Of a DNA stretch of 64,000 nt, positions 20,140-59,457 are shown piece after piece. Location of the stretch: assembly GCA_047495785.1 (NCBI GenBank), contig JBLDXI010000085.1, forward strand, positions 239,368 to 303,367, given 5' to 3'. The stretch comes from Lepidodermella squamata (taxonomy: Eukaryota > Animalia > Gastrotricha). The notes under the pieces are model-generated. The model had not been told where the DNA came from, did not search any database, and saw nothing but the letters and a program-made list of their open reading frames with translations. The position numbers were made by a program, and so were the translations under genes. Numbering within the stretch: position 1 is the stretch's first letter; each line of letters begins with the position of its first letter.

Positions 20140-21260
20140 ATGGTATTGATCGTTTTAATAATAACCATCGTCGTTGTGGGTTTGTCTAAATTTAAAATGT
20201 AAATTAGATAACTAAGCGGTGCTTTTTCGATCAGGCTTCTCTTTTTCTGAAGCGGGGATTCCTACTGCCAGGCGACAATCGAAGCACAGAGCATGGCGGC
20301 GTATCGCCCTCGGCGACGATGCTAACACCAACTCGAATGTGAACCGTCTCGAGGGTTCGCCGTATTTCTACTATGCAATTGATGACGGCAGCGACCAAGT
20401 GGCTCCGCTGGTGCTGCCATGGTGGATCTACTACCACCCAGAACCTACGACGCCAACGGCGACGACAACGACAACGACAACAACAACAACAACAACAACA
20501 AATGCCCCGGTAAGGCTTATTTATGTAGTCCTTTATGTAGGAGGATACTCGTAGGGCTCATTTCCTATTACTGCTTAAATCCCAGATAATTGGGGCCTTT
20601 TTTAACTAAAATTTTCTTTAATGACACGATTTTACAACTCTGAACGAAGCTGAATAAATAAGAGTGGCCAAAGAAAACATGCCGGCTCTTCCCCGACCAT
20701 CAAAAATCTGAATCTTGGGACTATTTATAATGCTTCCCTCGATGAACGACGTAATGATCTAATTTCCATTAATTTTCATCGATGCTATTTTTCAGGCTGT
20801 ATTTTCTCGCTGTCTCGGTCCTGATGGCGTTGTGACATGCCGATCGACAGCCTGCGACGGTAGTGAGAAGAAATACCCGCAGACGACCTATGCCAGCAAG
20901 TCAGCATGCGAGAACGCCGTGAAAACGTTGGCATTCTACCCTATCGGCGGGCCACTCGCTAATGCCGTCACATATTGTACGAACCTCGGCGGACTGCTAG
21001 CGAGCATCAAGACCCAGGCGGAGCTTGATCTAGCCATGACGCTCAAAGGCGCATTTAACCAAGCTCACATTGGTCTGTCGAATGTATCCGGGCAATGGCG
21101 ATGGTCTGATGGCTCGCTCTACGCTAACATGCCGCCCTGGGGCACCAGCCAACCAGATGCTGGGCCCAATTCTTGTGCCGTTCTTTACACTGGGGCTGTT
21201 GTTTATGATGGAGGCTGCGGCGCGTTGGCACCTGGATTCATGTGCGAAACATTTGCCTGA
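20140..21260 (+). CDS. Secreted C-type lectin, type A (gene A2), QPD motif
   Basis: Exons 20140-20179, 20235-20509 and 20796-21260: signal peptide, conserved head peptide, poly-Thr, CTLD. Confidence 0.88.
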
Positions 21261-22177: not shown

Positions 22178-23336
22178 TTATGCATAAGTTTCACAGAAAA
22201 ATGCATAGAAATTATTGCTGCACGAAAAGTCGAAAATAACAGGGCTACCGCTGAAATAGTCCATAACAGCACAAGCATCTGGACCAGCATTTGGCCGACC
22301 GGAGAGCCAAGACGGGATGTTGGCATACGGCGCACCATCGGACCACACCCATTGCCCAGACTCATTCGACAGGCCAATGTAGCCGTCCGAGACCGCCAGA
22401 GCATCGGTAGCTTCATCCTGTGTCTTGATTGTCGCCAACAGCCCGCCGATGCTCGCGCAAGTTGCAATCGCCTGGTCGCGAGTCATTGAGGTTGAGTAGA
22501 ATTTTAATGTTTTAACGGCGTTCTGGCACGCCGACATGCTGGGGAAGGACGTCGATGGGTATGGTTTCTCAGTCGCTTGGCAAGCTGTCTCTCGGCATGT
22601 CACTGCGCCATTTGTTGCAAGGCAACGGAAAACCACCTAACAATAAAACCGATTAAAGTTCGTTCAAAATTTGAAAAATTGAATTTCTCAAACTTGGTAG
22701 AATGGATAAATAACGAGAAAAAATGCAGTAGAACATTTTCTTTGCAAACTTCATAGGGCAGCAAATTTGTTACGAACATTGAGAAAGACACATGTATCAC
22801 AGCCTATAATTTTTCTCCAAAAGCAAATGATTTCTAATTCCTAATATTATGCTTTTAAATGATCTGAAAATTTGAAAATCTTATTTTTAATTCTTGAAAT
22901 TAGGTTTCAAAGCGAGTAATATTGATTTTCTCTGTGTGGTGATTTCTTATCACCATTTTTAAATAATTAATAATTCATACCGTCACAGTAGTTGTTGCCG
23001 GCGTTGTCGTCGATGTTGTCGTTGGCGTGGTCGTTTGTTTCGGGTGATAGTAGATCCACCATGGCATCAGCGGAGCCACCTCGTCGCTGCCGTCATCGAT
23101 CGCATAGTAGAAATACGGCGAACCCTCGAATCGATTCACATTCGAGTTGGTGTTAGCATCTTCGCCGAGGGCGATACGCCGCCATGCTCTGTGCTTGGGC
23201 TGCCGCCTGGCAGTAGCAAGTTCCGCTTCAGAAAAAGCGATGCCTGAGCCAGAAGAAAATAATGACTTTATGATGATACATCAATGAAGAAAGAACAACC
23301 TATGAAGGCGAGGCTTATGGAAATTATCAACTGCAT
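22178..23336 (-). CDS. Secreted C-type lectin, type A (gene A3), RPN motif
   Basis: Exons 23336-23300, 23243-22981 and 22636-22178; same architecture on the minus strand. Confidence 0.88.
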
Positions 23337-26487: not shown

Positions 26488-28751
26488 GGCTTTCCCCCAG
26501 ATCAGCAACTCTCACTTGAGCAACTCTCACTTGCGCAACGATTATCAGCTTTATTATAAGCACACGCGCTAATTAACGTTTAATATGTAAGAGAAAACAA
26601 CAAGTCTTATTTATATAGTTTTGATAAAGAGAGCATGTTAACCGACAGTTTGTCCAGCGTCGCGTAAACGAGCTGTTTGTCTTTGTTGGGTTTGGCAACG
26701 AAAACGTCAACAATTTTAGCAATTTTTTCATTAATCTTTTGGTATTTCTTTGACCGTTTGGCCATCAAGCCCGGTTCGGCAGCCATGGTGACCTTGGCCG
26801 CCGCCTCCGACTCCTCCTCCCGCAACAGCTCGATCAATCGCCACACGTTGATGTGGTATGACTTGGCCCGCCGGTTCGCCTTCGCGTTCCAGCCTTCAGC
26901 GGCGTTGTTTGTGCGGGTGTCGAGGCCGTAAACGTTCCACTCGGCCAGTTTGACTGTTCCAGTCCATTGCTTGACCCAGTATTTTTTGAATCGCGCAAGA
27001 GAAGGAGGGCAGTCGGCAAGTAGCATTGGGTAATAATTTTCAACAACGTCGAGGGGGAGTAGGGCGAGCGCCATAAATCGTCGAATAAAGCGCCGAACAT
27101 TCGGCAGTTTGACGTAGTGTCGCCAGAGCCCATTTTCGCGCACCCAGGAAAGAATGGCTTTGCAATAGTGAAAAAAACCTAGAAACAAAACAACAACAGT
27201 CGTTGGTCGAATATCGAAACAAAACTAGCTGACTTACATCCGATCATATCCTTGAAAAATTTCCGGATAACCGGTATGAAGCCAGTTTCGAAGTCAACTG
27301 TCGCGCTTTTTTCGCTCAGATCGACTCGGCTCTGAATCGTCTGGAACAACTTTTCATAGGTTTTTTCCGACTTTGACGTCAGAAAAGCGAAGACGCCCGG
27401 CAGGAGAAGCTGTTCGTCCTCGCTGGTTTCGATGGCCGAGTGTATCACGAATAACTGCTGAAAAATTCGCGGGACAATTTTGAACGTGCCATCGGCGTAA
27501 ATTCGATCGGCCGATTCGAGACGCTGAAGACCCCGCTCTGAACCGAAAATTGCCGCCACGCCGCCGTCTTCCGCGACAACGATGTCGATAAGGAATTCTT
27601 GATCGTCTAGGGTTTTGATGAAACGACCGAGGAGCGGTTCAAATTCTTCGCTATAGGCACTTTCCATGTTCGATATGAAGTCGGCGACCGAGGTTGGGTT
27701 TTTCGGAACATGTCTTCCTCGAACACGATATAGTGTACTTTGAACAGCTGGGTATTTCGGAATAAGGCGGACTTTTGCCTCGTCAGACTGTTTGACCTCG
27801 CCCAAGACAAGATTATGCAGCTCAGGCACAGGTACGCGCTTGTTATTTTCGACTTTTTGTTTCATTTCTCCGAAAATGTGGTATTTAATACACTCGTCCG
27901 CACTCATTGTGTGCCAAGGCAAGTGGCTCGGCGGCTCCAGTTGACTTCGAAGTTTCACCTCGCCGTCGACGATTGAAGCTTTAACTTTACAACCGCCGCC
28001 ACCCAGACACCGCCAAAATTCGGTACCGGCGTTGGTGAAGCATTTCCGGAAATGGGCGTCGGCAAAACACAACAGAGGGTAACCTTTAGTGGTACCCTTG
28101 ATGCCCTCGTAAATTACGTATGGGGCATCAGCAGGCGGCTCGTCCGGCTCGAGTGGTTCAGTCTCAACAGGCGGTGGATTATCTTGAGGTGGATTAGGCA
28201 CCGCCCCCTCGTTGCGACTTGTTGTGCGCAGCAGCTTCGCCTCAAGAAACCGGATGCGGGCCGTCTTCGGCGTGAGTAATTGTTCGTCGCCACTGCTAGC
28301 CGCTGCTACAGCGTGTTCTGGCTGTGGGGTCACCACTGCAACCAACACCGAGGTAGAAGTGTCTTGTTGTAGCTCAGTGTCTTCGGAGTTGTTTGCAGCT
28401 CGTAACCGCGCCTCAGCCTCGAGTTGCTGTATTTGTTGTTTTGTCAATAGATGTTTTATGCGGTGATGATTGGCTCGGCCGCGGTTGTCATCAAACTTTT
28501 CATTGCATACGAGACACTTTATCTCGACCATGTTTGCAGTATGAAATAAAGGTAGTAAAAAGCGATTTAAATGAACAGTTTATTGAAAAATTGGTGAATT
28601 CTACAGGTGAGACTCTCTGTTTTATATAATGTATCATGTGTTTATCGCGCGATCCTATTCGACTCGCGCTCGCTTATGTAACACCTGCGCACACACGCCG
28701 TTGCTCAAGTGAGAATTGCTCAAATACACGTTGCTCAACTGGGGTAAATTC
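26488..28751 (-). mobile_element. Full-length Mutator-like (MULE) DNA transposon
   Basis: Direct repeat GCCGAGAC at 26480-26487 and 28752-28759 (extendable to 10 bp). Imperfect TIRs ggctttcccccagatcagcaac / gttgctcaactggggtaaattc, with subterminal GCAAC..CACTTG repeats. Confidence 0.92.
26607..28531 (-). CDS. MULE transposase, ~621 aa after splicing
   Basis: The two ORFs are joined by a GT-AG intron at 27237-27179, giving IGCFFH. Motifs ADGTFK..QLFVIH, VDFE and RTNNAAEGWN; N-terminal C2H2-like and FLYWCH-like zinc motifs. Confidence 0.9.
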
Positions 28752-28885: not shown

Positions 28886-29224
28886 ATGAACTTCTCGATT
28901 TTTCTAGCCGTCGTTCTATTTGGTATAAGCAATTTCAAACATGCTTTGTCCTAAAATTCTTCGTTCTTTGTTGACAGCCATAGCTTTTACTGAAGCTGGA
29001 ATTACAGCTGCTAGGCGGGATCGCAGATACAAAAGATGGCGCCATATTTCGCTGGATGAAAATTCGAATGCCAACTCGAATGTGAACAACGTCGATGCTA
29101 AGCTGTACATCTATGACAGTGAAGAAGCGCCATCGCCCTTTCTATGGTGGTTCTACTACCATCGAAAAGTTTCGACTACAACACCAGAGCAGCGGACGGA
29201 AACCTCAACATCAACAACATCATC

Positions 29225-29256
<32 letters not shown>

Positions 29257-29854
29257 CTACTACTACTTCTACTACTACAACGACCAATGACAATAATGCT
29301 ACGACACCTGAGCCCGTGAGTTGATTTCCGGCCTTCGAGATTAGAAATCGATTATAAAAAAATTTTGCACCCCATTTTTTCTTCATTAGGCCGTGTTTTC
29401 TCGGTGTCTCGGCCCTGATGGCTTTGTAATGTGCCGATCGACACCCTGCGACGTAGTTGAGAAGAAATACCCGTCGACAACGTATGCCAGCATGTCAGCT
29501 TGCCAGAACGCTGTCAAAACGATAACATTCTACCCTATCGGCGGGCTGCTTCCAGACGCCGTCACGTATTGCACGAACCTCGGCGGACTGCTGGCGACTA
29601 TCAAGACCCAGGCTGAACTTGATCTGGCTATGACACTCAAAGGCGACGTTACGCTGGCTCACATTGGCCTGTCGAATGTGTCCGGGCAATGGACATGGTC
29701 TGATGGTACGCCGTATGCTAACATGCCGCCCTGGGGCCCCAACCAGCCAGATGCTGGGCCCAATTCTTGTGCCGTTCTCTACGATGGGGCAGTTGTCTAC
29801 GACGGTGGCTGTGGCGCTGGGGCACCTGGATTCCTATGCGAAACATATGCTTGA
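28886..29854 (+). CDS. Secreted C-type lectin, divergent type A' head (gene A5), QPD motif
   Basis: Exons 28886-28922, 28978-29315 and 29390-29854; longest Thr stalk in the cluster. Confidence 0.88.
29207..29283 (+). repeat. Coding (ACA)n/(ACT)n microsatellite encoding the poly-Thr stalk
   Basis: Trinucleotide run in exon 2 of A5. Similar runs at ~1147-1200 and ~20446-20500. Confidence 0.9.
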
Positions 29855-30954
29855 TTTCACCGAAAAATTAAAAAACCTTTTTCGTTGTACTCGGTAAACT
29901 CTGTAAAATCACCACATTATTTATAAATTCCCAACTTTTGAGTATATTTTGAACCCTGTATAGACTTCGAATAAAGTAACGAGAGAGCTTCTTTTCGATG
30001 TTTATGAACAAGTGATCAATAGTGAAGGAAATCAACAGTGCTGCTATGCAGCTCGAATCCCTTCAAAGCTATGTTCCGATTTTTGCCAACTTGACCACGC
30101 TCAGTAGCAGACACAACAAAATATTATTAAAACCGTTGAGTAAAAGGGTAGGGGTCTTGTTAATCGACTTACGCTTTTAAGACCTTGCGAAACCGGTCAG
30201 GTTTAGGGATTTTTTAGTTTAAAATTCGCAATTTTTATGCTTTAAAAACGAACGTTATCCTATTTTTTCTATTCCCTAAGCCAACAGTTCCCATTCTCAT
30301 TTCTCATTAGAGCGAATTTTCAATTTTCTGGAATCTGCCCGGAAGGAAGTTAGAAGGAAACCTAAAATTCCTTCCTTATTAGAAAAAAACAAGCTTCGTG
30401 ATGCTCATTTTTCACATTTTCAGTGGTGACTCGCCCAAAAATCGGATTGCTTCCTTTGCATTCCATTTCGTTAAGTTATTTTTGTTTTTTTTCTTTAGCA
30501 ATATAAAAGACCTTACTCCCAAGAACAGCATCGAAGACTTTTGGCATATATAGCTATAGGGAACTATATCGCGCATTAATCAGTTTCGCGAACTTCGAAC
30601 CAATGGACAGCAGCTTAACGTAAACGTCGAAAAAAATCACAATTTATTCAAAATTCGCGCACACTTTTGGAGGACTGCTTCAAAGATAACGAAAATTTTT
30701 GCTGACAAGGAGTCATCAAAATTTCGCACTTCCCCTGATATTTCATAAATATTTCCTCACCCTAATGTTTCGTCTGAAATTAAAGGGCAGGGCGAGACAA
30801 CAGATGTCACAGAGTTACAGGCCTTACTTTGCTAACTCACACATTTCTGCAAATTGGGTGTTTACACAAGTTGATGCTGAGCTTAGTTAATTTTTAATTA
30901 CACGTTTCAAAAAGGCCCAAGCTCCCACATTTCACTTTTCGATTCTCCGTGAAG

Positions 30955-33900
30955 ATGATAGGACTAATACTACTGCTAACCTTAGCAAACTTTCATGGCG
31001 CCTTGCCCAGTAGCAAAATAGGCGATTCGTCGACAAGCGGCAACAAGCTGGCCGAGTTTGATTCATGGATAAGATACGACAAGGTGGACGTCTTGCGAAG
31101 CAAATTTCCTGATCCGACTAAATTGGCAACGGTGAAGAATGAAACTGGCGATACATTGCTGCATTTAGCAGCTCATTACGGCAAAATCAAAGTCGCGCAA
31201 TTTCTCGTCGATAAAGCTGGAGCTGAACTTACGGCTCGCAACAAAAATGGCGAACTTCCGATTCACCTGGCTTGTCTAGCTGGAAAATTGAGCTTCCTAA
31301 AATGGCTTGTCGATAAAAGTGAAGAACTGGAGCTGCCGAGGCGTTTGACGGTCGATGCTGATACAACACAGGGCCAAACCCCGCTTTTCTACGCTGTTAG
31401 GTCGAAATCCATCAATGCAGTAGCTGTTGTGAAATTCTTGCTGGGAAAAGATGCGACTAGGCTTCATCAGGACAAAACTGGTCGGTTGGCCTTTGGGCTG
31501 GCGACTGAGCTGAACAAAACGGCAATCGGCGAGTTACTCAGCGATAATTCATCTTACGGTAGAACTATCAAAAATGGAACACGAACAACTTGGCACATCA
31601 TGGCAGCCCAAAATCAGGTCGACTACTTGGATCGCAATTTTGTTCGCTCTAAATTTGACGTATCAGCGCCAGACGAATTCGGCGATACTCCTTTGTGCTA
31701 TGCGAATCGGAATGGCCATTACGATTTTGTGGCGAAAGCGATGGAAAAATTGCCAAGTTTGAGCAATGGTTCGCTTGCATCGATCAAGTGCCGCTTAGTT
31801 ATCGAGAATGGGAACGCAGGCGCGAAGTCGATAGGATCCGGCTCTCTTTTGTTCCTTGCGGCGTTTATGCGGAAGGATAACCTGGTCAAGCTGTATCTAG
31901 AAGCAAAACTTGATCTTAAGGCGACTAACGAGGTGAGCAATTCTTTATTAAAGCTCAGTGTTAATTTATCGAAAAGTTTTCCAAATCTAAATCTCACGAT
32001 TTTCGATAATTTTAATTTACGTTCCTTCAGCAATCCTCCTTAAAAAGGTCCTTTTCGATCTCAAAAATGTCTAACTTGAAGTTGGGGTACAAAAATTCGC
32101 TATCTTTCACAAATTAGAATGTCATCCACGCTATGGCTAAGCTGTCTGACCAAGAAGCTCGGTTGATCGAAGCAAAAGATTCAATCAGCTCACATCTCGT
32201 CTCAACCTTCACCGCAATCTCCCCCAACCTCGTCGAAGATCGCGATGAAGCAGGCAGAACTCCGTATCTCGTTGCTGTTGCTAACGACGCTGAGCGATTC
32301 GCCGATGTCCTTGGCAGCCAATTCAAAGCGAATACTCTAGCTGCTGATAAACAAGGCTACACAGCTCTTCATCTCACAAGCAACAAGGCCGCCTTCAAGA
32401 AGCATTCGTCCGACTTCGAAGATCCTTTCAATTTGAAAGCTGACCCTAGCCAAATGACACCGCTTTTGGTAGCAGTTGATGAGCGAAAATCGATCGATTT
32501 CATTGACTTTTTGATCAAAGAAGGTGCTAACTTACAGGCGAGGAACAACTACAGCCAATCGGTCGCTCATTTAGCCGTGAAATCGAATTTTACCGAATTC
32601 CTAGAGCTTTATGCCTCGAAGCTTGATCTATCAGCATGCGACTCATTTTCATACACTCCGATGTTACTGGCAATCGGGGCTGGCAATCACAACCTTGCGA
32701 CATTCATGTTGAATACCAGCGAAACGCTTTGGAATAAGCCAGTCGATTGTCAAACTAACGACAACGTGCTTCATTCAGCTATGCGCTTCAAACAAATGGA
32801 AGTTGTGAAGTACGTGATGCCGAAACTCGAAAAGCTCGAACAAATGAATATTGCGAACAAACTCGGCGAAACTCCACTTTCAATCGCTATTGAAGTAGAG
32901 TTCACAGCTGGTGTGAAGGCGATTGTTGACCGGAATCAAACTGCTGGGCTTGGGATTGCTTCGAATGGCTGGCCACTCTTGCATCGAGCTGTTCGCTGCA
33001 GCTCAGCTAGTATCGAAATTATCGATTTGCTACTCTCGCCGTTACCAAAGGACGAATTAACCCTGGTTCTCAAGCAGAAGAACATCCTCGGCCGAACCCT
33101 GCTATGGCTGGCAGTTGAGCAAGAATGCGCCAGACTTGTCGCGTTATTGATGGACAAATTTAAGGCTGGCTGCGAGGTGAATAGCAACGGTAAGTTGCCG
33201 CAAGACTGGGCGGAAGCTGCTGGGTTTCAAAGCGTTGTATCTGTTCTGAATGGCTACGACGGCTGTAAGAGGCAATCGCCGCAATCCTGCGCTTTGAGTA
33301 CAGGCATTTCGCCTGAATCGGCCAGGCTAAAAGGTTTGAGATTCTTCTTCCATTTTGAACCTATATAAGGTTAATTTTTCAGCTCTATCGGCTCGACCGA
33401 ACGCGATTAAGAACGGTGTTATAACTTATCAAGAAAACGATGCTTGTGGCGATGCTTCCGGGACAATCGAGTGCACCGAAGGCTACTCACTCATTGGTTC
33501 AGCTTCAGTTACTTACTCAGTTGGGGAAAACGCATGGAAAACTGCTGGCTACTGCGCGAAAAGTTTGCCATTTCCTCAATTTTTTTTTTAATTAGAATCC
33601 GAAATGTTTTCCAGCTTGCGATGAAGGCATTTCTTCTATTAGCCAGGCCGAGATCAGCGAGGTGGAAACCCCAGCTGTCGCTGGTAGTTCCGTTACGTTC
33701 AAATGCATGGAAACTTTCACGCTCAAAGGCTCGAACGTGATCAGGTGCTTGGAAAATGGCACTTGGTCTGTTATGGGTAGCTGCGTTGATTCTGGTTAGT
33801 TAATCGAACTTCTGTCAATTCCATTTTCACTGGATATTTCTTCATATTTTCAGAGACCAGCTTATACTGCGACGGCTCTCCTACAATTTCGAATGGAGTT

Positions 33901-35180
33901 TTACTGAATTTCAATCCATCGGAAACGTATTCTATCGGATCTGTCATTGCTGTTTCATGCTTGGATGGCTTCGCATTGCAAGGACCCGAATTTGTCTATT
34001 GCCTAGCCAACAACTCGTGGTCGCAACCCGGCAACTGTATTGCGCATGGTATGTCATTACGCAGAAAATTTAGCTTCATAAGTCATATCGAAAAATTTCA
34101 CAATTTTCGTACAATTCATTTCATTAAGATGAAAGTGATCACTACGTTCTCTATGATTAGAAATGTGTAAGCAAAACACCCGATTTTCTGAAATGGGGAG
34201 CTTATTTTCAAATTTGCAAAGCACGATGCTCGAGCTAGAATATACTTTACATGTAAAGGGTCCCTCTGTGGTTCTTTCGGGTTTTGAGGCTTGGAAATTT
34301 CGAGCTGGAGGTACCCCCTTACCTCCTTGTACTTATAATTTTTTTTTGAATTTCCCGTATTTTGCGAACACTGGCAAATTATGCTATTTTTGTACTTGGA
34401 TAAGGTTCTTGCGTGGTCCCTACTATCGAAAACGGCTCCGTTACTGATGAACTGGGGTCGAAGCGTTACGAACCACTCGCAACACTCGCACCTGGTTCAA
34501 TCATCGTAATTCATTGCAACAAGACCTTCGAAGTCGTTAATGGTTCCATGGTTTCAACTTGCTCATTCGAGTCAAAATGGAGACCCGAGCCTGGTTCGTG
34601 TCGCTTCAAGGTAACAAAATTCCATGAACAAATCTGCAGTAGCCTATCTTCCTTTTTCCAGGATGCAACGGCCGAACAATTCTTGCTTATCGAAGCTGTA
34701 AAATCTGGTAACTTGAGCGTTGCTAAGAAATTGGTGGAACAAGGAGCTGTGAACGTGAACTGGCGTGACGAGAGGTCTCAAGGCGATTGGCCGGTCAAAA
34801 ATGGAACTGCACTACACATCGCCTTAGCTTTCAAAGCCCCTCTGAACTTCATTCGTTTGCTCGTCGAAGAAGGTCGTGCTGATGTGAATCTCAAGGAGGA
34901 TACATACGGTTCACGGCCGCTTGAAATCGCAGTGTCGGAATGTAGCGGCGACGTTGTTGAGCTTTTGCTCAGAAATGGCGCTGCTATCGATGCGAGAAAT
35001 GGCCGTGAGGGCTACACGGCTCTCATGGCGGCGGCTATCAAGGGCAGGCTTGATAATGTTCAGATTCTGGTTCAATACGGCGCTAGTGCGAAGCTGAAGT
35101 CAAAGAAGGGAACAACCGCCCTTGATGAGGCTATCTCAGCCAACCGTGACCAGGTCGCTCGATTTTTACGTGCTCTGTAA
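30955..35180 (+). CDS. Signal-peptide protein: ankyrin array, 4 sushi/CCP domains, ankyrin array
   Basis: Exons approx. 30955-31932, 32118-33333, 33383-33561, 33615-33795, 33854-34048, 34406-34610 and 34662-35180 splice in frame. G.T.LH.A repeats; sushi exons with C..G(Y/F).L.G....C....W....C. Confidence 0.82.
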
Positions 35181-35729: not shown

Positions 35730-36676
35730 ATGAAATTGATCATTTCAATAAGCCTTGCCTTAATAGGTTTTTCCTTCTTCAATATGTTTTACCAACAAAT
35801 AAATGTTGTCTCTATTATCAGGCAATGTTATTTCGGAAGCTACTACCAGGCAACAGCCCAAGCACAGAGCATGGCGACGTATCGCCCTCGGCGACGATGC
35901 TAACACCAACTCGAATGTGAATCGACTCGAGAGTTCGCCGTATTTCTACTATGCGATCGATGACGACATGGGTCCGCCGCTGCTACCATGGTGGATCTAC
36001 TATCACCCGAAACCATCGACAACGACGCCGACTCAAGTGAGAACTCTTCATAAAAATAGTAGCAATAAAATTATGAGCGAATTAAGCCATGTAATTGACA
36101 ATGCAATTAATTAATTGGCTGTTCTATAGAGTTTGCAAATATTTTCTTCTGAAAAGTTTACATCAGTGGCCGAAAACTTTTGGTTTTGAATTGTATCGCT
36201 ATCATCAGGTTGTTAACCGGTGCCTTGGACCAAATGGCGCAGTGACATGCCGAGAGACAGCTTGCCAGGCCACTGAGAAGCCATACCCATCGACGACCTT
36301 CACCAGCATGCCGGCATGTCAGAACGCCGTTAAAACGTTCAAATTCTACTCAACCCCTACATCAAGTCGCGACGAGGCGGTCGCAACATGCGCGAGCGTT
36401 GGCGGGCTGTTGGCGACAATCAAGACACAGGCGGAGGCCCTCGATGCTCTGGCGATCTCTTCGAACATGGCCGCCTACATTGGCCTGGTGTCGAATGCGT
36501 CCGGGCAATGGACGTGGGTCGATGGCGCTCCGTATGCCAACTACCCGCCTTGGGGCTCTGCTGGTACTGGTAGAAATGCGTGTGGAGTTTTGAACTTGTT
36601 TAATGGCAGCCCTGTTATTGTCGACGTATCGTGTAGCAATACATTCACAGCATTTTTCTGTGAAACCTATGCTTAA
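35730..36676 (+). CDS. Secreted C-type lectin, type A (gene A6)
   Basis: Exons 35730-35766, 35822-36036 and 36209-36676. The CTLD loop lacks the xPx motif (WGSAGTGRNAC). Confidence 0.88.
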
Positions 36677-37986
36677 TCAAAACAAAACTGACATGGCTAC
36701 AATCTATAATGACTATTGTCTGATACCACTTTAACTTTGAAGAGCACAGATGACCTTTAATAAATAGCGTATACCACACCACTCTTTGGTCGCCTTTGTA
36801 TTACTGTCCAAGAAATAATAAAATGGTCATTATTTCACAGGCTGTCGAAAGCTGTGTATGCTGAGACGCTAGGATGTTACTGAAATTACAAGAGTTGATT
36901 TAATTTATGTAATTTAGCAATCACCGCCATGTGGCTATTCCACGCCGCTATGCCGAACCTTCGAACTTCGTTATTGTGAAATAAATGAAAGCGTATCTGA
37001 CGAGAAGGAAGTTTCTTCCCTAATTCTTTATACGAAGTTTCTTTCGACGTCAAGGCCTAGTGGATTTTGTGAGGTGATACAGAGCCACTTTGCGAGGATT
37101 TGCCGAGGAAATTGGTAAGTCACCGATGATTACTGTTTTGCCTAGTTCTTTTCCTTTTTATTCGTCATTTTGAAATTTGGGAGCTACTCCCGAAATCTTG
37201 GTCACTATGAATTAATTCAAATTGTGCCATTTTTCGGCTCTCCATAGGTCATGTTTTTTTGAGGGAAGATAGGCCGAGTGGTCAGATATCGGCAAACATC
37301 AAATCAGACTGATTAAATGAAAATCGAAAAAGTCGTTCATCTAGGAAAAACTATTATTTGAACCATTCACGAATAGCCATTCCGCCGTTTTTGTCATAAA
37401 TTCAAATTAGTTTCAGCTGATGCCTCATTTCATTTGATATTGCGCTCTTCAGGAGCAATCTCTTCTAATTTGTGTTACTTAAAGTTCTTCTTGGTCTATC
37501 AAAATTAAGACCATGAGACCGAAGACCGTACCAAATCAGCGACAAAAGGTCTCAAAAAGACCGATACCGGAAAAATTGTATGGTCTTGGTCTCACTTGAA
37601 AGACCAGACCGAAAGTCTGGGTCGAAGTGAATACGATTTTCAAGCAGGACTGACCCTGATACGCCTGAAATTGCGAGAATGTTTATTGCCGATTGGCAAT
37701 TCGACCTGTCTTCAATCCAAAACAGCTTTGTTTTCATATTTCTCTCTGATTTCCGACTCTTGGGAGGTCACAAAAGAAATTATATAAAAAACAGGTTGTT
37801 TTGATTTGGAATTTAAGGTCACGTGTTTAGTTTTTATTCCTAACGTAAATACACTTTATTTGCAGCGTAAACAGCCTATTGAATTCGGACACGGTGATCG
37901 CGTGGACTTCAGTTCAGTTCAGACTTTTTTATTTATCCGCCATTCAAGTTATTTTTTAAGCTTTTTAAGCGTTTCAAGCTTAAGAC

Positions 37987-39754
37987 ATGATAAAGTTCGC
38001 AGCTTGCTTGTCGTTATTTTGCGTATTTGGCGGTGTATCCTGCCAATGGAAACGCTGCATGTCACTACTCGACAACTCATTCGTGGACTGTTCGACATCT
38101 TGTGACCTATTGAAGGAATACCAGGTCTATTATAACTTCTCCACTGTTTAGCCCTTCAATAATCAAATCAAAACCCTTTAGTCTGGTTCGAGTTTCACTA
38201 CGTTCGATTTGTGTCGAGCTGGAGTGAGTAATTTTAAGAATATTTCTCTTCAAAAACATTTGTAAATGTTCTCGAACAGAATGGTCGCATGTGTTACAAA
38301 TTTGCCGCGTTAACTCCAAGTTGCAGGCCCGGCATTGTTCCATGCAAAGCTCCAGATGAAATATCGGTGCGTTACTTTGAAAGGTTATTCAACTTCAATT
38401 GCTTTCTCGATCAGTTTCAGCCGTTCTACGTCCGATCGATTCTTCGCTCGAGTTTGCAATACTGCGAAGTCGATAGAAATAATTTTGCGGTACGTCGAGA
38501 TTTACTATATTAAGATGCGATAATTGAAAGTCAAATTGTTAATTCGTTTCAGAATCAAAACTTCAAGCAGTGTTCGGCGAACAATACGCTCGTCACGTGC
38601 GTTCCAATTAACCAAACCTGCCCGAATAGTACAGTAAGTGAATTTACCCCCCGATCCCACCCCCCTTCCGTCTACGCCCCTGAAGGGAGTTGATGGTGAT
38701 CCTTCATTTTTCAGGTAATAGGTGGACGAACATTTGTCAACCTTGCTACGTGTGTTGACGGGAAAAGTGAGACAATTCGGCTGTTGACCGTGGACATGGT
38801 GTACTATTATTGAAATCTATTTCCAGTTCAAGTACCAGACAGTGAGAAGCCACATGTTCGATGTTTCAGCAACCCAGGGCAAGTCTTCAACGGCTGTCGT
38901 CTCAGCTCAATCGGCTGTTCAGCTAGCAACGAGACCCAAGAAGCGGTTCCGAAGCCATACATCAACCTTGATAACTGCCTTCGAGGGGTGAGTGTAACTG
39001 TTAACAAAATCTCGAAATCAGTTCTTGTTGTTTCAAGGCTGCTGCTCTGTGTGATTTAGGAGGATTCAAGCGGTGCGTCGGAAGACCATGCCCTGAAGGA
39101 TCGAGTCAGGTAGGTAACATAAGAAACATACTTTCTACTTTTAGTTTAAAGGCATTTTCTGATCAGATATTGGTCTACTCAAATTCGACTTCATTTGAAA
39201 CAAACTATAGGACATGTTTGGCTGATATGACTCTGGTGAATTTTCGGCCTTGCAACGTCAGCATTTTCCATTTTTTTATTCATCAGGTTGTTAACCGGTG
39301 CCTTGCACCAAATGGCGCAGTGACATGCCGAGAGACAGCTTGCCAGGCCACTGAGAAGCCATACCCATCGACGACCTTCACCAGCATGCCGGCATGTCAG
39401 AACGCCGTTAAAACGTTCAAATTCTACTCAACCCCTACATCAAGTCGCGACGAGGCGGTCACAACATGCGCGAGCGTTGGCGGGCTGTTGGCGACAATCA
39501 AGACACAGGCGGAGGCCCTCGATGCTCTGGCGATCTCCTCGAACATGGCCGCCTACATTGGCCTGGTGTCGAATGCGTCCGGGCAATGGACGTGGGTCGA
39601 TGGCGCTCCGTATGCCAACTACCCGCCTTGGGGCTCTGCTGGTACTGGTAGAAATGCCTGTGGAGTTTTGAACTTGTTTAATGGCAGCCCTGTAATTGTC
39701 GACGTATCGTGTAGCAATACATTCACTGCATTTTTCTGTGAAACCTATGCTTAA
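37987..39754 (+). CDS. Type B head joined to an A6-like CTLD exon (gene B3, chimeric)
   Basis: Nine B-type exons starting MIKFAACLSLFCVFGGVSCQWKRC. Terminal exon 39287-39754 is nearly identical to 36209-36676. Confidence 0.87.
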
Positions 39755-39949
39755 TCAAAACAAAACTGACATGGCTACAATCTATAATGACTATTGTCTG
39801 ATACCACTTTACCTTTGAAGAGCAATAAATAAATCAATAAATAGCGTATACCACACCACCCTTTGGTCGCCTTTGTATTACTGTCCAAGAAATGATAAAA
39901 TGCTCATTATTTCACAGGCTGTCGAAAGCTGTGTATGCTGAGACGCTAG
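39281..39949 (+). repeat. Near-identical direct duplicate of 36203-36872
   Basis: Offset 3078 nt. Identity begins at the acceptor CATCAG and runs through the exon and ~195 nt of 3' flank. Confidence 0.95.
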
Positions 39950-41079
39950 CATAGCAGCCAGGGCACAGATGCTATGCAGCCGACGTTTCCAGGCACGCAA
40001 AACGGGGTCAGAGCCGCGTATTTGTAGCACATTCGGCCGTTCTAAAATTTAAGAATTAATTAAAGATTTAAAAAGAAATGAAGAAATTGTAAAAAAACTT
40101 CAAATTTAAAAAAAAATTGACCTACCCCAGTGTTGCAGACGCCGATTGTTCGGAAAATTCCTCCCAGCTATCAAGATGTTACTTCCCATGCGTTCGAAGC
40201 TCCATAGAAGCAAACCTGATAGAGATGCGATTCCAATCGCTGGCATTGCATGCTTGTTTTATCGCCTCACCCGAAAAAGTCTCACTGATCATTCTCTATG
40301 AAATGTTAGCCTCTCAAAAATAATTAATCGGCACAATAACGAACTGAAATCACAAGTTTAACCGATGGCTGGAAAATGCAATAAAAATTGTGCCGATGCG
40401 AACACGCAGTCGCAGACCAGGATGATCGAAGTTTCAATCCTAACAGTTTTTCAATGCTTCCACGTGTAGTTAAGCCATGGTCTTTGCATTGCCGAATGGT
40501 TTAGTTGAGTAATCACAACGTGAAGTTACAACGTGGTCCAAACGCGGACGTTTACGGTCTTTAGGACATTTTGCGGGCTCCGAAATCATTAACAATCATT
40601 AAAAAAATGTCGGGGCTCGGCTCCATATTGGCTCCGGACTTTGGCTCCGATGGGCTCCAAAGGACTCCCTTGCAAACTTGGGCTTCAGATAAGTGCATTT
40701 TCGGTGGATTTTTGAATATGGCGTTGGCTGAAATACCATTGTCTTCATGATTCGAACAAATTGTCATATTTCTCTCCGGGGATTTAAAAAAAATGTTAAT
40801 ATGGTACTTTGAATTTTAATATGAAGACTTCAGAGCCTTTTCGGCTGCTCTTTTAGACATTTCGCATCAGGCTCCGGGATGATTTTTCAAATTATAGGAC
40901 ATATATGTCTCATAAAAAGGAAAAACAACGTTAAAAGGGAGCTTGAAATAGAGTCATTTCTGCGAATGAATTTCCCGGAAGTAAATCATGAGCAAACACA
41001 GATAAAAGCCGGACGCTTGAGTGAAACGGCTGAAAAACCCGACTTATTCTTTTCAGACATTATTCAAATTTTTCGAAAA

Positions 41080-44000
41080 ATGAAGGTCAAGTCACGATTT
41101 CTCACGATTTTATTGAAATTTCTCGAAATTAGTACAGCTTTGAAAATCGAAGCCGCTGGAAATGCTGAACTGAAATCGACCATCAAGAATCTAAGCTCAT
41201 CAGGTCAAAAAGTCGCCGAATTAAGCGATCCAATGCCTCGATTTGTAACTTCAACCCACTTCAACACGAAATCGACATCGAACAGGACGAAATTGATAAC
41301 AATTTTAACATCGATCAACTACCTGGGACCATTATACACAGGTCCGATTAGTACCAAGTCGCTTGAATTAGCTCTCGATAGATTCGCCGTTTTGGAAAAC
41401 TGGCTGCCTGGATATGAAATTGCACTCGATTTGATAGATGATGAATGCCTTGATGGGCCGACAGTTACTGGGTTAATGCATCAGATTCAGCGAAATCAGG
41501 ACGAGGCTGGCCAACTGAATCGCATCTCACTCATGTTTCCTACAACGTGTTCAGCTCAAGAAACATCTGCAGAGGTTCTGAATTACTACAACCTAACAGG
41601 GGTAGGTGGTAAAATCTGATTTCGAAGCCCAGTCAGATATTTTTTTTATTTACGCTTCCGATGGTGGGGCACTTCCTCCTAGACAGTTGCCAGCCAGATA
41701 ATTTACGATATTTCGAAGCTCAGATCACATTAATGAACCTGTTCTATGGGCCATGTCATTTAAAATTCAAGCCTAGGCAAATTGAATTAAATTTGTGTGA
41801 ATAACCTTTAAAGCTCCTCATTGCCCATTCTATAAAGTCACTTGAACCTTATCAAATCTGAGGGGACCTTTATGACCGTTTTGAATCTTTCAAAAACCTA
41901 CCTAGACTTGAGCTTCGAAATCTCTGCTTCAAGCAACAATGAGAAAGCTCGTTACAATTATTGAAACGCTTCCAGCTATTTCCACTGACCTTTCCAAGCT
42001 TGGTTAAGATTCCGGAACCTTTTCGAAGCTATGGGAACCTTTACATTACAACATCTGAACATCAAAAGGTTTTAGTTCTTTTCCAGCTTGATAATTAAAA
42101 GTATTTGAATTATCTAAAGCTTTTTCGTGTCTTATTTATGTTCATGGTACCTAGGCGAAAGGAAAGAGGATTGAAAATACTCACAGTGAACATTGAGCTT
42201 TGTCATTCTGGTGAAGCCTCTCATCTTTTATTTGGGAATTTCTCAATAGAGTTAACCCTTCGAATCATTTTCATCACTCTAGTCTGTATCAAGATCCTTT
42301 TTACTTCAGATGGTCCTACTTCAAAACACCCCAGAATTCTTGCTACAACGCAAGCGGTACAAGCAGTTTTTTGGGCTTGGCGAAACAGGCGACAAACCCT
42401 ACATCGCATTGGCCTCATTTGTCTCTCAGATGGGCTGGCGTCAGATTGCCGTCATATCGGAAATAAATTCCTACTTCAACGCAGTAAGTGCGATTATATG
42501 ATGCATAAACACGTTAAAACAATCTAGTCCCTTTGATAGATTGAGCGATATTTCTTTCCTGTACTCACTCGAATGAACATAACCCTAGCGTGGGTTGGCA
42601 AAATAACGTATGCGTCGTCGAACAGTGACGAGTTGGTTTCAAATTTCGAAGAGCTGAAATCGCACGATCAGCGAATTATTTTCGTAAATGGCGACTCAGC
42701 ATCCGCAATGGCGTGCTGGCTGCACCGATACAAAATGTTCGGACCATCCTACGTTCTATTCTTCGTAAACTGGGTCTACATCCCACCAAGCGACTGCTAC
42801 ATCCCAGAATACGTTGCATCTTGGTGCACGAAGGTAATGGTAGCCCAAGTTTACGAGGGCGCCTTTTTCATGGGCGATTCTTCACTGCTTGATGTTTACG
42901 GCGAAGATTGGACAGATTCGACTGGGCTTAGTGGCAGGCAGTTTATCGAAGGTATGAGGTCCAAAATCAATCGCCCTGAGGAATCGATTGGCTGGCAGTA
43001 TTGGCGGACTATGTACTACGACGCTGGGCTGTATCTCGGTTTCGTCCTCAATAGGACTGAATCGATTCTACGGGGCAGAAATCAAACCCTTCTTGATTGG
43101 ACGATAAATTCTGAAAAATTCCAAGAAAACGCTTCGGAAATCATGAAAATCTACGAAGAAGCAATATATTCGACCTATGTTCAAGGTTTCAAGGGGATTT
43201 ACGACTTCGATCGGGCTACGACAGTCAATTCAAACGGCTACACCCCTGCGACGATATTTCAGCTGAGAAATGCGGAGGACTTTAGCAAGTACCCTGATCA
43301 ATACGTAGTTGGGATTTACCAATCAAATAACCGGACCAATCCTACGACTCTACGGCGCGATCTAGTCAAATGGAGTACGAAAGATGGGTTACCGCCTCTG
43401 GACAGACCGATTATCGTGCCTTTGGAAGTAACTTTGATCCCGCAGGTGGTTGCAGGAGCAATTTTCGGTAAGGGATACGCTAAGGTCTAAATCACTGAGA
43501 TTTCAGTAGTTGAGAGTATTATAGGATATAAGCGGTTTCTTTCGTCAATTCGAAAATCAGTTAATTTCAGACTGTTTTTACAGGTATTTCCGTGATTCTT
43601 TTGATTTCCATGCTTTCGACGGTGTTGTTGATTACTTTTGGAGCGAAAAACTACCCTTCGACTTCTTTTAGTCTCTGCGAGAATTTTATTGGCTGGGGTA
43701 ATGTTGTAACTTGTCTCTCTGGCCTGGCAATGCCGATAAATCACTCAATGAGAGCTAATATCGCGGTTTGCGCCATGGCTATTGCTATCTTCGTTTCTAT
43801 CGGCTTTGTTACCACAATGCTCGGCATTATCGGCCAGATCGAATTACTTCACGCGAGACTAACATATTCTTACTGCAGAGGTTCTCGACAATTCCTTAAA
43901 CCCTCCTTATCGAATCGATACCTAGAGGAAGGTTCTACGAAGCAAAGTTTAAGATTACCTAGCGAATCCAGTTTACAGATCATAGAAGTTAGAAAAGGAC

Positions 44001-44737
44001 CTGGTCGTCTAAAAGTCGTAATTTTCACTTTGAACTGCTTCCTAGTTATTGGAATATTCGCGACAGGCCCACTGGAGACAGCACGAGTACTCGGGCCTAT
44101 GTTTCATGATGATAATGATGCGAGTTTGATATTTCAAGCTTTTTATTACCAGCCGTACGTCTCAGCATTTCCGGATGAAGTCCAGGCTATGGCGATCGCT
44201 GTAGCCACTCTTCATGTTCTCATTTTTGCGTACGCTTGCTACGCGTCGTACAAATCCAGTAATGTAAGCCCTAAATTGATCGTATTCGAATTGCTTTCTG
44301 TTAATGAAATTTTTTTTATGAAATTCTAAAATATCTTAAAACAATGCTTGAAGATTCCTCAAGTCAGCAAAAATAGTCATAAATTTGTAGGAAAGATTAA
44401 ATTATACCGCCCATTTTCAGAATCTATACTCGACACAATGGAATTTCAAGTTGGTTCTTCAAACAAGACGCGCTAGTCGCGCTCTTTACTGTATTGCCCT
44501 GTTTCTCATGGCTGCAACATTCCTCGGCTTTCGTCTCGGTCCAGATTACACCTTGCCACTAGGGGCCAGCTTAGCTATCCTTTTTTCCGCTGCTTCATTC
44601 GGTCTGGTGATTTTGCCAAAAGTGAACGAATTCGCCTTTTGATTATTTTCATCCAATTTATCTTCATTTTACAGGCTCTATGCAACAAACCCGCTATTGC
44701 GACTATTAAATCGAACATGTCAGCAACCCAATATTAA
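41080..44737 (+). CDS. Divergent class C GPCR (GABA-B-like Venus flytrap plus 7TM)
   Basis: Exons approx. 41080-41601, 42310-42483, 42540-43467, 43584-44263, 44421-44621 and 44675-44737. ELALDR....WLPGYEI.L...DDEC and MGWRQIAVI are flytrap motifs; seven hydrophobic segments end in ILPK. Confidence 0.8.
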
Positions 44738-49801: not shown

Positions 49802-51280
49802 GGGCAGGCGTCGGTCTTAATTCATAACAAAACAATGCGATTTCATAGCGTTTTTCGAGCGTTTTCAAAAGCGTTCAGCATTCAAGAAAGTTAGCATTTA
49901 GCATTGGAAAAAATATTACTTGGGTAAAATTGACAGCAAATAATGTGACGAGGCATCCGTAAATTCTTCCCGATTATTTGACGATTTTATTGACTTTCTG
50001 CGCGGGCGGAAAAATGTGAAAAATTGCTACCAAGGGGATCGAAAAACGATTTTTCTATTCACCTGATTTAGACCGGATATATTTTATTTGGAGGAGGGCG
50101 GTACATTTGAAAAATGGGTAACGAAGCCAGCGAAATGGGATGCCTTCGTCCACGAATTTTTGATACCGGTTAGATACAATTTTTGGGCCGGCGGAAAAAT
50201 GTGAAAATTCCTATCTAAGACAGCGGCAGGCCGTGCCTCTACCCGCGGTTTTTCTCAATTTATAAATTCGGAATAGTGCATTTTCCTCATTTTGGCGCAT
50301 TATAGACTTCAGTACCTATTCTCACCGATTTACCGGGGAAACAAATAAGTTCACTGCGAGGAAACCACGACTAAAGCTCGATCGGAATTAATCGGGAATT
50401 ATCGGTATATTCAACTTAAGTGAAGTTAATCTGGATTCATCAGATTGTTCCTGCCAAAAAATGCCGGGGCGGCCTACGGCAATCTATATGAAAATTTCTG
50501 GAATATATCGGAGAAAAGTCCGAGAAATTTTTCAGTAACCCTGGAATTTCAAAAATAAAATACCGAATTTTGCAGAATTTTCATTAAAGCTATCAACGAA
50601 TAAATTCTGAAATTTAGGGCATGCATGCTGCTGAAATTAGACAAATTATGAGTGTTTTCGATGCAAATGTTTTGCAAATGGCAACTCAAAGATCCCGAAC
50701 ATTTTTTTTCGATGACAAATGATATTTAATTAATCGGCTGATAATTTTGCCCATCAGGTAAAAATAAGCAAATTCTTACCAATTCATCGATGAGGCATGT
50801 TGACTAGATCTCGACGTATGATAGAGCCAGCGCCCTCATCAACCAATCATTCAATTGACATTCCTTCATCCCGAATCCCGAATAACACGCGATCCTCTTT
50901 CATGGGTTGCTTGGGCCGGTGGTGGCGCCGGTGGTTGGCGACCCTGGTGCTGTTTTGTCACGCTCGCCGTAGTCGTGCTGGCGCATTCTGTGGAGGCCAC
51001 GCTCGCTAATCACTGTGTTGAGCGCGAGAATGTAACACTTTCCAATCGACTCGAAAACTTGAAATGCGGCATCTGAAAATAAGAGAAAATAGCTTTGATG
51101 ACGTGGGTTTTTTCATGATGCAATGTTTGTCGGGAAGTCCGAAGTTCGAGATGCATACGAAAAGATCCATATTTTTCCCGAAAAAAACCCGAATTTTGTC
51201 CGAATTTTGTAGATGGTGAATAAAAAAGCTTCAACTTGCCTAGAAAAATCAATGGTCTTTCACAGAATTTTGGTCGGTCA
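49802..51280. repeat. Dispersed ~1.4-kb repeat, copy 1
   Basis: Collinear with ~54647-56010. Its GC-rich core recurs at ~51775-52134 plus 53244-53410 and at ~57560-58060. Confidence 0.85.
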
Positions 51281-52134
51281 TAGAAGGATAGAAAGCCAGG
51301 GATATTAAATAGGAAATAGGTGGTAATAATGCGCAGTTACGGTAAAAATGTATCTCTTCACACTTTTCAAAGCTGGACATATATTTTTGTAAACAAATTT
51401 GAAATTGTAATGAGAACTACGAAATCAGACGACGTAACCCCATTTTTTATGCGGAAAAGAGGGTGCAAATTATCTGATGAAATTTGGCAGGCACTGATCT
51501 TCCAATCGTAATACCGATTTTGGAACGCGAAGGAAATTGCTTTGAATGAGTCAAGAAATCGGAGGGCGACCTTCGTCAAAGAATTGAACCTCGATGCAAG
51601 GCCTTGCCGGCATCTATTCCTGTTTATAGCACGGCATTGAAACACCTTGGAATCCTAGAATCGTCCTTATTCAAGTCAACACACCTTTCGCCATTTGCTG
51701 GAAAATATAGAAAATACCCCAAACCCTATTTTTCACTTGCTACCGGTCAAATAAAAATTAAGTCTATTTTCTTCGATGCATTAATCAAAAAGGGAATCGG
51801 CTGATATTTTTGCCAATCAGATGAAAAAGGAATAAGAAAATTATTACCGATGGCTGGGACATGCTGACTGTATCTTGACGCTTGCTATGGGAGCCAGTTC
51901 ACTCGTCAACCTGTTATTCGATTAGCAATCCTTGTTACCCGCCTAACACGCCTCGAGTTGCTAAGGCTGGTGGTGGTGCCGGTTGTGGTCGACGCTGGTG
52001 TCGCTTTGTCACGCTCGCCGTGTTGACGCATACTACGATGGCTACGCTCGCGCGAGAATGTCCCACTTTCCAATCGACTCGACAATTTGAAAAATCATCT
52101 GAAAATAAGAAAATAGCTTTAATGACTTGGCTTT

Positions 52135-53243
52135 CCCCCGACGATGAAATTCTATTAGATAAAAATCCAAATTTAACGGAAATTACTCTCACCGAAATTA
52201 AAAATGCCATCGACCACATGAAAAACGGTAAAGCCCCGGGTATAGATGAAGTAAGACCCGAAATGATCAAAGCTCTGAGCGAGGCCAATATTGAATGGCT
52301 CAGGGAAATTTTGAATCGAGCTTGGATAGATAAGAGGGTCCCAGAAGAATGGTCAACGGCTATAATTACCCCAATTTATAAAAATAAAGGTGAGAAATCA
52401 AAATGCCAAAATTAACTAAACTACAGAATTTCTAAGGCAGGCAGTGTTTTCGGCGCCATGAATAAATTCATGTGCAACAAAAGTCAGGTTTCCATAGTTA
52501 CAAAACTTAAGGTACTGACATGTGTTATAATACCTACCATCATTTACGCCTGCGAATCGTGGAACATATCGATAGCCCAAGAAAATAGACTAAACACTAT
52601 AGAATATCGATGGCTTCGATCTATAGTAGGTGTCCACCTAATGGACTATATTCCAAATATAGACATTCGACTTGCGTTATGCGGAGGTCTCATTGAAGTG
52701 AGCCGCATTGTTGAAAAACAAAGGCTAAGATATCTAGGGCACATAATTAGGTCACGTGACTATGACGTAGAAGGACTAATACACAAAATATATATTTGGA
52801 CGCCTCCGCTTGGGTGGTTTGCACCCAGAGGTAGACCTCGAACCAGATGGATCAACGGAGTGCATAGAAGCTTAATTAAAGTAGGTCTTACTAAGGAAAT
52901 TCGCCGGAAAAAGAAAACCAATAAGAACAATAAGGTCAAGGATAAGAAAAATAAAGCCACCAAGAAACGAGAAAACAGAAAAAATCCCGGCGAAAAGGAT
53001 TTTGAGATCAAAATTATTCCCGATGTCCAACTAGCGGAATCGGTTTCTTTTGAAAAAGATGAATGGCGCATGGTTGTTAACTCGATTGAAAATTACGAAT
53101 TCTATACAAAAAGCAGAATCCTCGACTGTGGGGGTGGGTGAGGATCATTCTTCGCCTGCCTTCGCCCTCTTCAAAACCGGAAACGGTACACGACGCTCAG
53201 TCCCGAAGAGGATAAATAAAAACATTATTATTATTATATTATT
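52135..53243 (+). mobile_element. 5'-truncated, internally deleted RTE-like LINE
   Basis: 13-bp TSD ATGACTTGGCTTT at 52122-52134 and 53244-53256, and an (ATT)n tail. MKNGKAPGIDEV..PIYKNKG precedes RT and YACESW..RLRYLGHI..RGRPRTRW follows it; the RT core is absent. Confidence 0.92.
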
Positions 53244-54646
53244 ATGACTTGGCTTTTTCGCGATGTAATGAGAAGGTGGAGGCCCATACGAAAATTTTCA
53301 TAAATATCTCGCAAAGAAGCCGGAATTTCGTTCAACGTTGTGGACATTGTAAAATTTGAGACCTCTCATGTTAGCCGAAAAATTATGATCAGTCTTTCAT
53401 TCAATTTTTGTCAGTCATAATTCATCACTTGAATGGGAATATCAATTTTTAGGGAACTTGTGCCAATGAAAGTAAACCGATCAAGCCAATCTACCCGGGA
53501 AAAAAATATTCATGGGTCTGAATTATTTAATTGCGGCTAGATTATTTTTCGACGTTCATCAATTCTTTACATACGACATAATATTAGTATAGACTGTCTA
53601 CTCACGGGAAAAGGTGTTTAACGCCATGCCTATATGATTCTAAAATTCTAAAGGAAAAATTCTCGAAACCTTCCAATTATTCTAATTCTAAGGCTAATTA
53701 TTAGTGATCACCTTTCTCGAAATGTGTCCTAAAAACGACCGAGCGATGACAAAATGAAATACCGATTTGTTTCAAATTTGCAATTTTTGAAAATTCAAAA
53801 TGAAAATTTTCAAATTCAAGAAGCCTGAAAAAAACAGAGGAAATAATTACCGATGGGTCATTGATCGATGCCGACGAAAATTGGCGTCTGATATCACAGC
53901 CAGAATCTTGATCGTGTCGCCATTCGATTTCAAATCCGGCTGAGCAGAAAACTTGCGGACATAGGGGCCTGCTTCCGCTTTTGCGTTGCTAGGCCACACT
54001 GCGATTTGTGCCCACTTCGCCGATTTGTGCCCACTCTAGATGGCAACGATGTTGAGGTGGACAAGTCCCAATTTTCAACGGCGTCGGATAGCGACCCGCC
54101 ATCTATAAAGAACGATGAAAAACAATAAATTGGAAAAATCAACACAGAAAGTTCTTAATTTAAAGTGATTGTAGACAGAGTATCGATGCTCCAAGGCTAA
54201 CATTAGGTCTTCAAATTGTATAAAATCTACCTTAGATGGCATCTGAACTCATGTCTTATTAAAAAAAAACAGCGAGCGGAAAAAAATAGTTCGATTTCAT
54301 CTAAGATCTAATTAAGGTATGCAGCTCTTCACGGCTTTTTTCATAGCGAAGTTGGTAGCTTTCTAATATTTCAAAGTTTCGCAGGAAATGTGAACATTTT
54401 TCTAAATTATTCGACCTCTCATTAACCCCCAGCCACGTCCTTGATCCGTAATTTCACCGAAGAAATAACAAAATTTACCAGGGAAAACCGGGAAAAAGCT
54501 TCACTATAAAAAAAAGTTCGCTATTTAGCACGGCCGGTTATTTAGGATAAAAATTACAACAATTCCGAATTGCTAAATATCAGAAAACTATTTAGAATAA
54601 TCGCGGGTTATTTATCCTGAGTAACATAGGGAAAAATGGAGTTTAG

Positions 54647-59225: not shown

Positions 59226-59457
59226 CCGTAGAGCGGTACAATTTTGAACAGGGTACAACTTTGAACATTTTTTCAAAAGTACAATTTTGAACGAACGTTT
59301 GCATTGAAAAAAATGAAAGTGTTCAAAATTGTACTATCGTGAGTGTGAAGTACAATTTTGAACATTAACGAAATTTTCAATGCAAACGTTCGTTCAAAAT
59401 TGTACTTTTGAAAAAATGTTCAACTTTGTACTTGTTCAAAATTGTACCGCTCTACGG
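59226..59457. mobile_element. Palindromic (foldback) MITE with TA TSD
   Basis: CCGTAGAGCGGTACAATTTTGAACA.. / ..TGTTCAAAATTGTACCGCTCTACGG; almost the whole length is self-complementary. Repeated GTACAATTTTGAAC; TA on both sides. Confidence 0.9.

Follow-up and report, generated by a model that had tools for sequence, protein, structure and literature searches.

A probable replacement of a lectin-type last exon between tandem paralogues in the gastrotrich Lepidodermella squamata

Two neighbouring genes of a lectin-like cluster in Lepidodermella squamata end in almost the same exon, and they raise the question of how one exon type came to stand behind two unrelated heads, with the identity beginning at the splice acceptor. 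The window analyzed here is a stretch of 64,000 nucleotides of contig JBLDXI010000085.1 (assembly GCA_047495785.1), with a GC content of 41%. It contains nine homologous last exons, each consisting of one four-cysteine module followed by a C-type lectin-like domain (CTLD). An A head (signal peptide, basic/aromatic peptide and Thr stalk) precedes six of the nine, and a B head, made of nine small exons with five four-Cys modules, precedes the other three. The A genes have three exons and encode 237-279 amino acids (aa) with every frame intact; B1, B2 and B3 share an identical ten-exon layout (413-414 aa, all intact). The intron preceding the last exon is in phase 0 in every A and B gene. The genes of main concern are A6 (35730-36676), B3 (37987-39754) and the minus-strand gene A3 (23336-22178). 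A6, on the plus strand, has exons at 35730-35766, 35822-36036 and 36209-36676 with GT-AG introns and an intact frame of 239 aa; its predicted product has a signal peptide, the basic/aromatic head, a short Thr stalk, the four-Cys module and the CTLD.

The window also holds other open frames and repeats. Ankyrin- and sushi-like open frames (30898-35180) lie between the A6/B3 pair and the remaining cluster, and long minus-strand frames that by eye resemble a Mutator-type transposase (26610-28579) are located between A4 and A5. A 1.3-kb repeat (49885-51184 and 54704-56008, 81% identical, within 49885-56008) has more partial copies at 51766-52134 and 57561-58012 and is adjoined by reverse-transcriptase-like frames (51879-53138). 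An inverted repeat of 83 nt with a loop of 13 nt, 89% complementary, is found at 59253-59431.

A self-BLAST of the window revealed one outstanding repeat, 36202-36875 against 39280-39952 (both on the plus strand), with 97.2% identity over 675 columns and an E value of 0.0, which rules out chance similarity. The two copies consist of seven acceptor bases (TCATCAG), the last exon of A6 (36209-36676) or B3 (39287-39754), and about 200 nt of 3' flank beyond the stop codon, including a 3' UTR with AATAAA at +83. They differ in 19 columns, corresponding to about 12 events over 675 nt. The last exons, each of 468 nt and 99% identical, have exactly six mismatches (36228/39306, 36383/39461, 36460/39538, 36580/39658, 36616/39694 and 36649/39727), two of them non-synonymous (G/A and A/T); the 3' flank adds five substitutions and one complex change at 36746-36758. 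At this last site A6 agrees with A3, so it is the B3 copy that is derived there. Four of the six exon changes are silent (p 0.035 against neutrality), an excess for which selection acting on alleles of A6, not on B3, may be responsible. Upstream of TCATCAG the introns of A6 and B3 are unrelated (p=0.95 against shuffles), and the near-identity forms a sharp block embedded in otherwise diverged or unrelated DNA, as expected of a chimeric paralogue. An earlier note on this DNA had described one exon type on an A gene and a B gene, differing at about six positions and two amino acids and identical from the acceptor CATCAG onwards, with unrelated sequence upstream. Alignment bears out this description and extends the start by one base, to seven nt before the exon. 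The pairwise alignment that the note proposed as a check places the 5' breakpoint at 36202/39280 and the 3' breakpoint at 36875/39952, about 200 nt past the stop.

The two parts of B3 have different histories. Its upstream, presumed promoter region (37791-37986, plus strand) aligns with the upstream regions of B1 and B2 (p=0.001 against shuffles). According to the gene model and the alignment to B1 and B2, exons 1-9 (37987-39235, plus strand) encode the signal peptide and five four-Cys modules; they lie at 37987-38124, 38182-38223, 38280-38366, 38415-38489, 38553-38633, 38715-38766, 38827-38987, 39038-39109 and 39167-39235. This head is 77-79% identical in nucleotides to the B1 and B2 heads (dN 0.13-0.16, dS 0.86), and the whole is an intact ten-exon gene of 414 aa with intact splice sites. 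Introns 8 (57 nt) and 9 (51 nt) have lengths divisible by three and contain no stop codon, so that exons 8-10 are in one frame even when unspliced (39005-39751).

The last exon of B3 belongs with the A genes. The exon shared by A6 and B3 is 83% identical in nucleotides and 75% in amino acids to the last exon of A3 (22178-22636, minus strand), its closest outgroup, and only 59-62% identical in nucleotides to those of B1 (exon 10, 7719-8183, plus strand), B2 (exon 10, 11165-11629, plus strand) and C1; the note's observation that it is nearest to A3 and unlike B1 and B2 therefore holds. In the exon tree, B3 grouped with A6, A3 and A4 at 100/100, with B1, B2 and C1 in a separate group, and the AU test rejected the exon groupings B1+B2+B3 (p 1e-42) and B1+B2+B3+C1 (p 1e-8). 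The shared UTR is homologous to the UTR of A3 (p 0.001) and not to those of B1, B2 and A5. Since the head of A6 is closest to that of A3 (90%), A6 is consistent over its length and B3 is the mosaic: its head and last exon have different closest paralogues. These comparisons show B3 to be a chimera: the promoter and exons 1-9 are of B type, and the last exon, in frame with them, and the UTR belong to the A3/A6 lineage. A6, or an allele of A6, is the probable source of the exon.

B3 is not the only chimera here. The head of A2 is 83-89% identical to those of A1, A3 and A6; its last exon pairs with that of A5 (83% in nucleotides, dS 0.52), although the A5 head is only 61-66% identical, and grouping the A2 exon with A3/A6/B3 was rejected. 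For this pair (20140-21260 and 28886-29854), the match of the last exons runs from the acceptor to just beyond the stop. The gene at 854-3096 combines the A1 head with a B-type last exon, C1; the two splice in frame (252 aa), and the intron between them, of 1.4 kb, contains an inverted and interrupted A5-like head relic (2135-2526) and a B2-like intron end. C1 was also considered as a simple reciprocal product and rejected as such: it is only 69-71% identical to B1 and B2, and lies behind this rearranged intron. A2 and A1-C1 are older chimeras of the same cluster. A B relic at 3714-5290 comprises exon 5, a 1-kb gap and exons 6-8, followed directly by a C1-like UTR, with exons 9-10 missing. These three cases indicate frequent rearrangement of the cluster, with working chimeras as well as debris among its products, a pattern of ordinary birth-and-death evolution.

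Why the B3 breakpoint should fall at the acceptor can be read from the flanking introns. Intron 9 of B3 (39236-39286, plus strand; 51 nt, phase 0) ends in TTCATCAG, as does intron 9 of B1, and is similar to intron 2 of A5 (p 0.001 globally, p 0.02 with the ends trimmed). TCATCAG terminates intron 9 of B1 also, and A5 intron 2 terminates in TTCATTAG. It is plausible that TCATCAG and the first G of the exon were a pre-existing microhomology, so that the seven intron bases need not have been copied. B3 equals A6 from the first exon base, and the switch must therefore lie within the seven acceptor bases or at the exon edge. A and B genes are homologous only from the last exon on, their heads and introns being non-homologous, so an exchange cannot begin further 5'. 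This limit of homology, together with the fact that only in-register products leave a working gene, would account for the acceptor position with no need of an exon-aware mechanism.

The 3' edge is less simple. Copy 2 is immediately followed by an inverted B-type exon 3 relic (39955-40041, minus strand; nhmmer E 3.6e-9), which is 87 nt long, as are the real ones, and has its own acceptor; it is identical to exon 3 of B1-B3 at 47-49 of 74 nt, and its end at 39955 is 3 nt from the block. We did not find exon-3-like sequence on the A6 side (p 0.83). Just 3' of this relic, open frames at 40825-44326 resemble a receptor ligand-binding region followed by hydrophobic segments. The shared tail contains a probable, tentatively assigned antisense relic of the second half of a four-Cys module (minus strand; 39914-39953, and about 36837-36879 in copy 1), which in a profile scan ranks 21 of about 128,000 positions on the B3 side, sixth among non-module positions, and 72 on the A6 side. 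Just beyond copy 1, before this relic, stands an acceptor-like TTGTAATTTCAG (36880-36891, minus strand; its role as an acceptor is putative), a motif that occurs once per strand in the window. The edge of copy 2 also carries an 8-bp inverted repeat, GCATAGCA / TGCTATGC (39949-39977); inverted repeats of this kind within 30 nt occur at 0.1% of window positions, and this one was noticed post hoc. The DNA downstream of A3 matches neither the A6-side nor the B3-side 3' flank. Transposon capture was considered and rejected, given the lack of terminal repeats or a target-site duplication at the junctions.

A real replacement between paralogues, whether by a single exchange or by two-ended conversion, most likely produced B3. 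We favour one unequal exchange with an A6 copy, to which we give about an even chance of being the actual route. A single exchange would have taken place between the chromosome carrying B3 and a copy of A6 that probably lay on the homologous chromosome. It would have occurred where the exon begins, by unequal crossover or by a switch of template, on the shared TCATCAGG and the first codons, which are similar. All sequence to the right of the acceptor would then derive from the A6-bearing molecule, and what distinguishes the two copies may be allelic variation that predates the event. Copy 2 has B3's own 5' flank; intron 2 of A6 shows a weak likeness to intron 2 of A3 (p 0.06), which makes the flank on the A6 side the native 5' flank. 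The antisense module relic seems continuous over the B3-side 3' edge, which suggests that the flank after copy 2 may be the native 3' flank, as one exchange predicts. An old antisense relic would have lain behind A6; copy 2 would keep its first half and have lost the intron, copy 1 would keep the acceptor and have been interrupted later by the B3 unit, and one exchange at the acceptor would then explain the layout. This relic-based reading of the native 3' flank draws on weak signals found post hoc, with conversion close behind. The single exchange also needs a haplotype in which B3 does not follow A6, and counting against it are the acceptor-like motif present on the A6 side too and the inverted repeat, which has the look of a scar left by repair.

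Two-ended ectopic gene conversion in place would give the same product, and we consider it possible, if the less probable of the two routes. Here a break in the B3 last exon would have been mended with A6, which lies 3 kb upstream, as the template; copying would have begun at the microhomology of the acceptor and finished by end joining about 200 nt beyond the stop codon. Two findings agree with conversion: the promoter of B3 is its own and its intron 9 resembles introns of A5 and B1, and self-BLAST of the window gave no near-identical sequence from which the B3 head could have come. An inverted-repeat scar at a repair edge has been described for synthesis-dependent end joining (PMC2943611), a model that the 8-bp repeat at the B3-side edge fits, and for NKG2, conversion confined to the exons of the lectin domain has been documented (PMC3210942). 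Conversion, however, requires two junctions, has a 3' end with no clear homology to stop in, and makes a coincidence of the exon-3 relic ending within 3 nt of the block edge.

The age of the event bears on whether it could be an artefact. Between the A6 and B3 copies dS is 0.036, compared with 0.38 for A3-A6 and 0.38-1.6 for other paralogue distances, which supports a young event relative to those distances. The heterozygosity of L. squamata is 2.987% (PMC11660948), and the A6/B3 divergence lies below it; the copies could therefore be alleles, and the event anywhere from a few generations old to the age of the alleles. By the same measure, the divergence alone does not speak against a chimera of multiple displacement amplification, or a misassembly, joining the B3 head to the exon of the other A6 allele. 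The assembly was made from amplified DNA of one animal, in which chimeras form by template switching (PMC11660948), and one such switch would suffice. We nonetheless consider an artefact improbable. The HiFi reads (83x, 13 kb on average) far exceed the 0.67-kb repeat, and the chimera screen of the assembly found none (PMC11660948); moreover, a whole animal provides many templates, a random chimera would rarely hit the sole position that yields an intact 414-aa frame, and the older chimeras within the cluster show the process to be natural.

The earlier note had read the locus as B3 very recently acquiring an A-type lectin exon, that is, as exon shuffling. That an A-lineage exon stands behind a B head and that the event is young next to other paralogue distances are upheld, but nothing was acquired in the sense of a gain: B1 and B2 have ten exons, as B3 does, and end in a homologous phase-0 exon with module and CTLD, so that B3 reflects replacement between paralogues with no domain gained. 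Classical exon shuffling by intronic recombination is a concept of Gilbert and Patthy. B3 resembles it in that a domain-coding exon is joined to another gene over a phase-compatible intron, of phase 0 in A and B genes alike. It differs in that the domain architecture of the recipient is unchanged (the same ten exons in B1, B2 and B3), that the exon is terminal and not a symmetric internal module, and that the exchange point lies at the edge of homology (the last seven intron bases or the exon edge) and not within non-homologous intron DNA. A true gain, in which a lectin-less B head captured the exon through intron recombination, is very improbable: lectin-less B copies do arise, the relic at 3714-5290 being one, but besides the shared architecture of B1 and B2, B3 retains exon 9 and the whole of intron 9, whose acceptor is B/A5-like, an indication that a downstream exon was already present. 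The B3 case is an example of the ordinary recombination that takes place among tandem genes; it does not represent a novel form of exon shuffling.

Three head/exon mismatches among the nine last exons (B3, A2 and A1-C1) speak for a dedicated system that swaps cassettes at the acceptor to diversify these lectins, as does the A2/A5 match, which likewise begins at the acceptor. We give such a system only a slight chance, since the junctions carry no signal sequence or long repeat, the acceptors vary between members, broken and out-of-register products are also present in the cluster, and homology limits with selection for frame already explain the breakpoint. Conversion mediated by cDNA from A6 mRNA, which predicts a start exactly at the exon edge, where the identity does begin, hardly deserves credence, because the block goes about 110 nt beyond the AATAAA conserved with A3 and thus, by this signal, past the poly(A) site, carries neither a poly(A) tract nor a target-site duplication, and seems to contain antisense relic DNA.

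The shared exon encodes more than a CTLD. Residues 1-40 form a further four-cysteine module, and residues 53-152 match Pfam Lectin_C (PF00059) above the cut-off. The predicted model (pLDDT 88.8) has CD23 as its best structural match, with a TM score of about 0.6-0.7; profile and predicted fold thus both agree with the C-type lectin-like domain known from the structures of CD23, langerin and mincle. A6 and B3 differ from that domain in being fused to a four-Cys module with no Pfam match and in lacking EPN or QPD, as well as WND, the motifs by which sugar binding is judged; the loop is also shorter in them. Among the other members, EPN is found in C1, SPN in B1 and QPD in A2, A4 and A5, and WND in none. 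The B3 product is predicted to be a secreted rod of six four-Cys modules, now with the lectin-like head of A6. Given the A6/B3 loop without EPN or QPD, the swap should change what B3 binds. In a full HMMER search, the best relatives outside were distant CTLD proteins (26-41% identical), those looked up being mostly mannose-receptor-like. The last exon and the open frame 39005-39751 gave no match in word-indexed protein searches, which cover lengths of 0.55-1.75x the query; neither did we find a relative in a metagenome scan, nor a near-identical protein in public sets.

The closest precedent is the homogenisation of ligand domains in the receptors NKG2 (KLRC), Ly49 (KLRA) and DCIR/DCAR, where, for example, exon 5 of human NKG2C has been overwritten from NKG2E (PMC3210942). 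There too, neighbouring paralogues that differ in their other halves have near-identical lectin-domain exons through conversion or recombination (PMC3210942). Those, however, are membrane receptors of opposing signal whose lectin domain is spread over several exons, whereas A6 and B3 are both predicted to be secreted proteins, with unrelated heads, and what moved was a single last exon together with its UTR. Chimeric gene duplicates of C. elegans and Drosophila, such as Sdic, and the fog-2/ftr-1 conversion offer a second comparison, chimeras being common among young duplicates (PMC3449122). As in B3, a young gene is made from parts of two adjacent genes by duplication or exchange at the DNA level (PMC3449122); unlike them, B3 has a join by which a homologous exon was replaced and the architecture of the B genes kept.

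A wider reading, which we hold to be rather doubtful, is that the last exon with module and CTLD is an exchangeable cassette, reassorted among unrelated heads often enough for polymorphism within the species. If true, the gastrotrich would have a germline combinatorial repertoire of secreted recognition proteins, and the B3 swap would still be segregating between the two haplotypes of one animal. B3 reveals no new mechanism. It is an unusually clean and young case in which an entire recognition domain passed from one subfamily to another within a lineage-specific lectin cluster; with both junctions readable and the product intact, it offers a direct test of how such clusters diversify.
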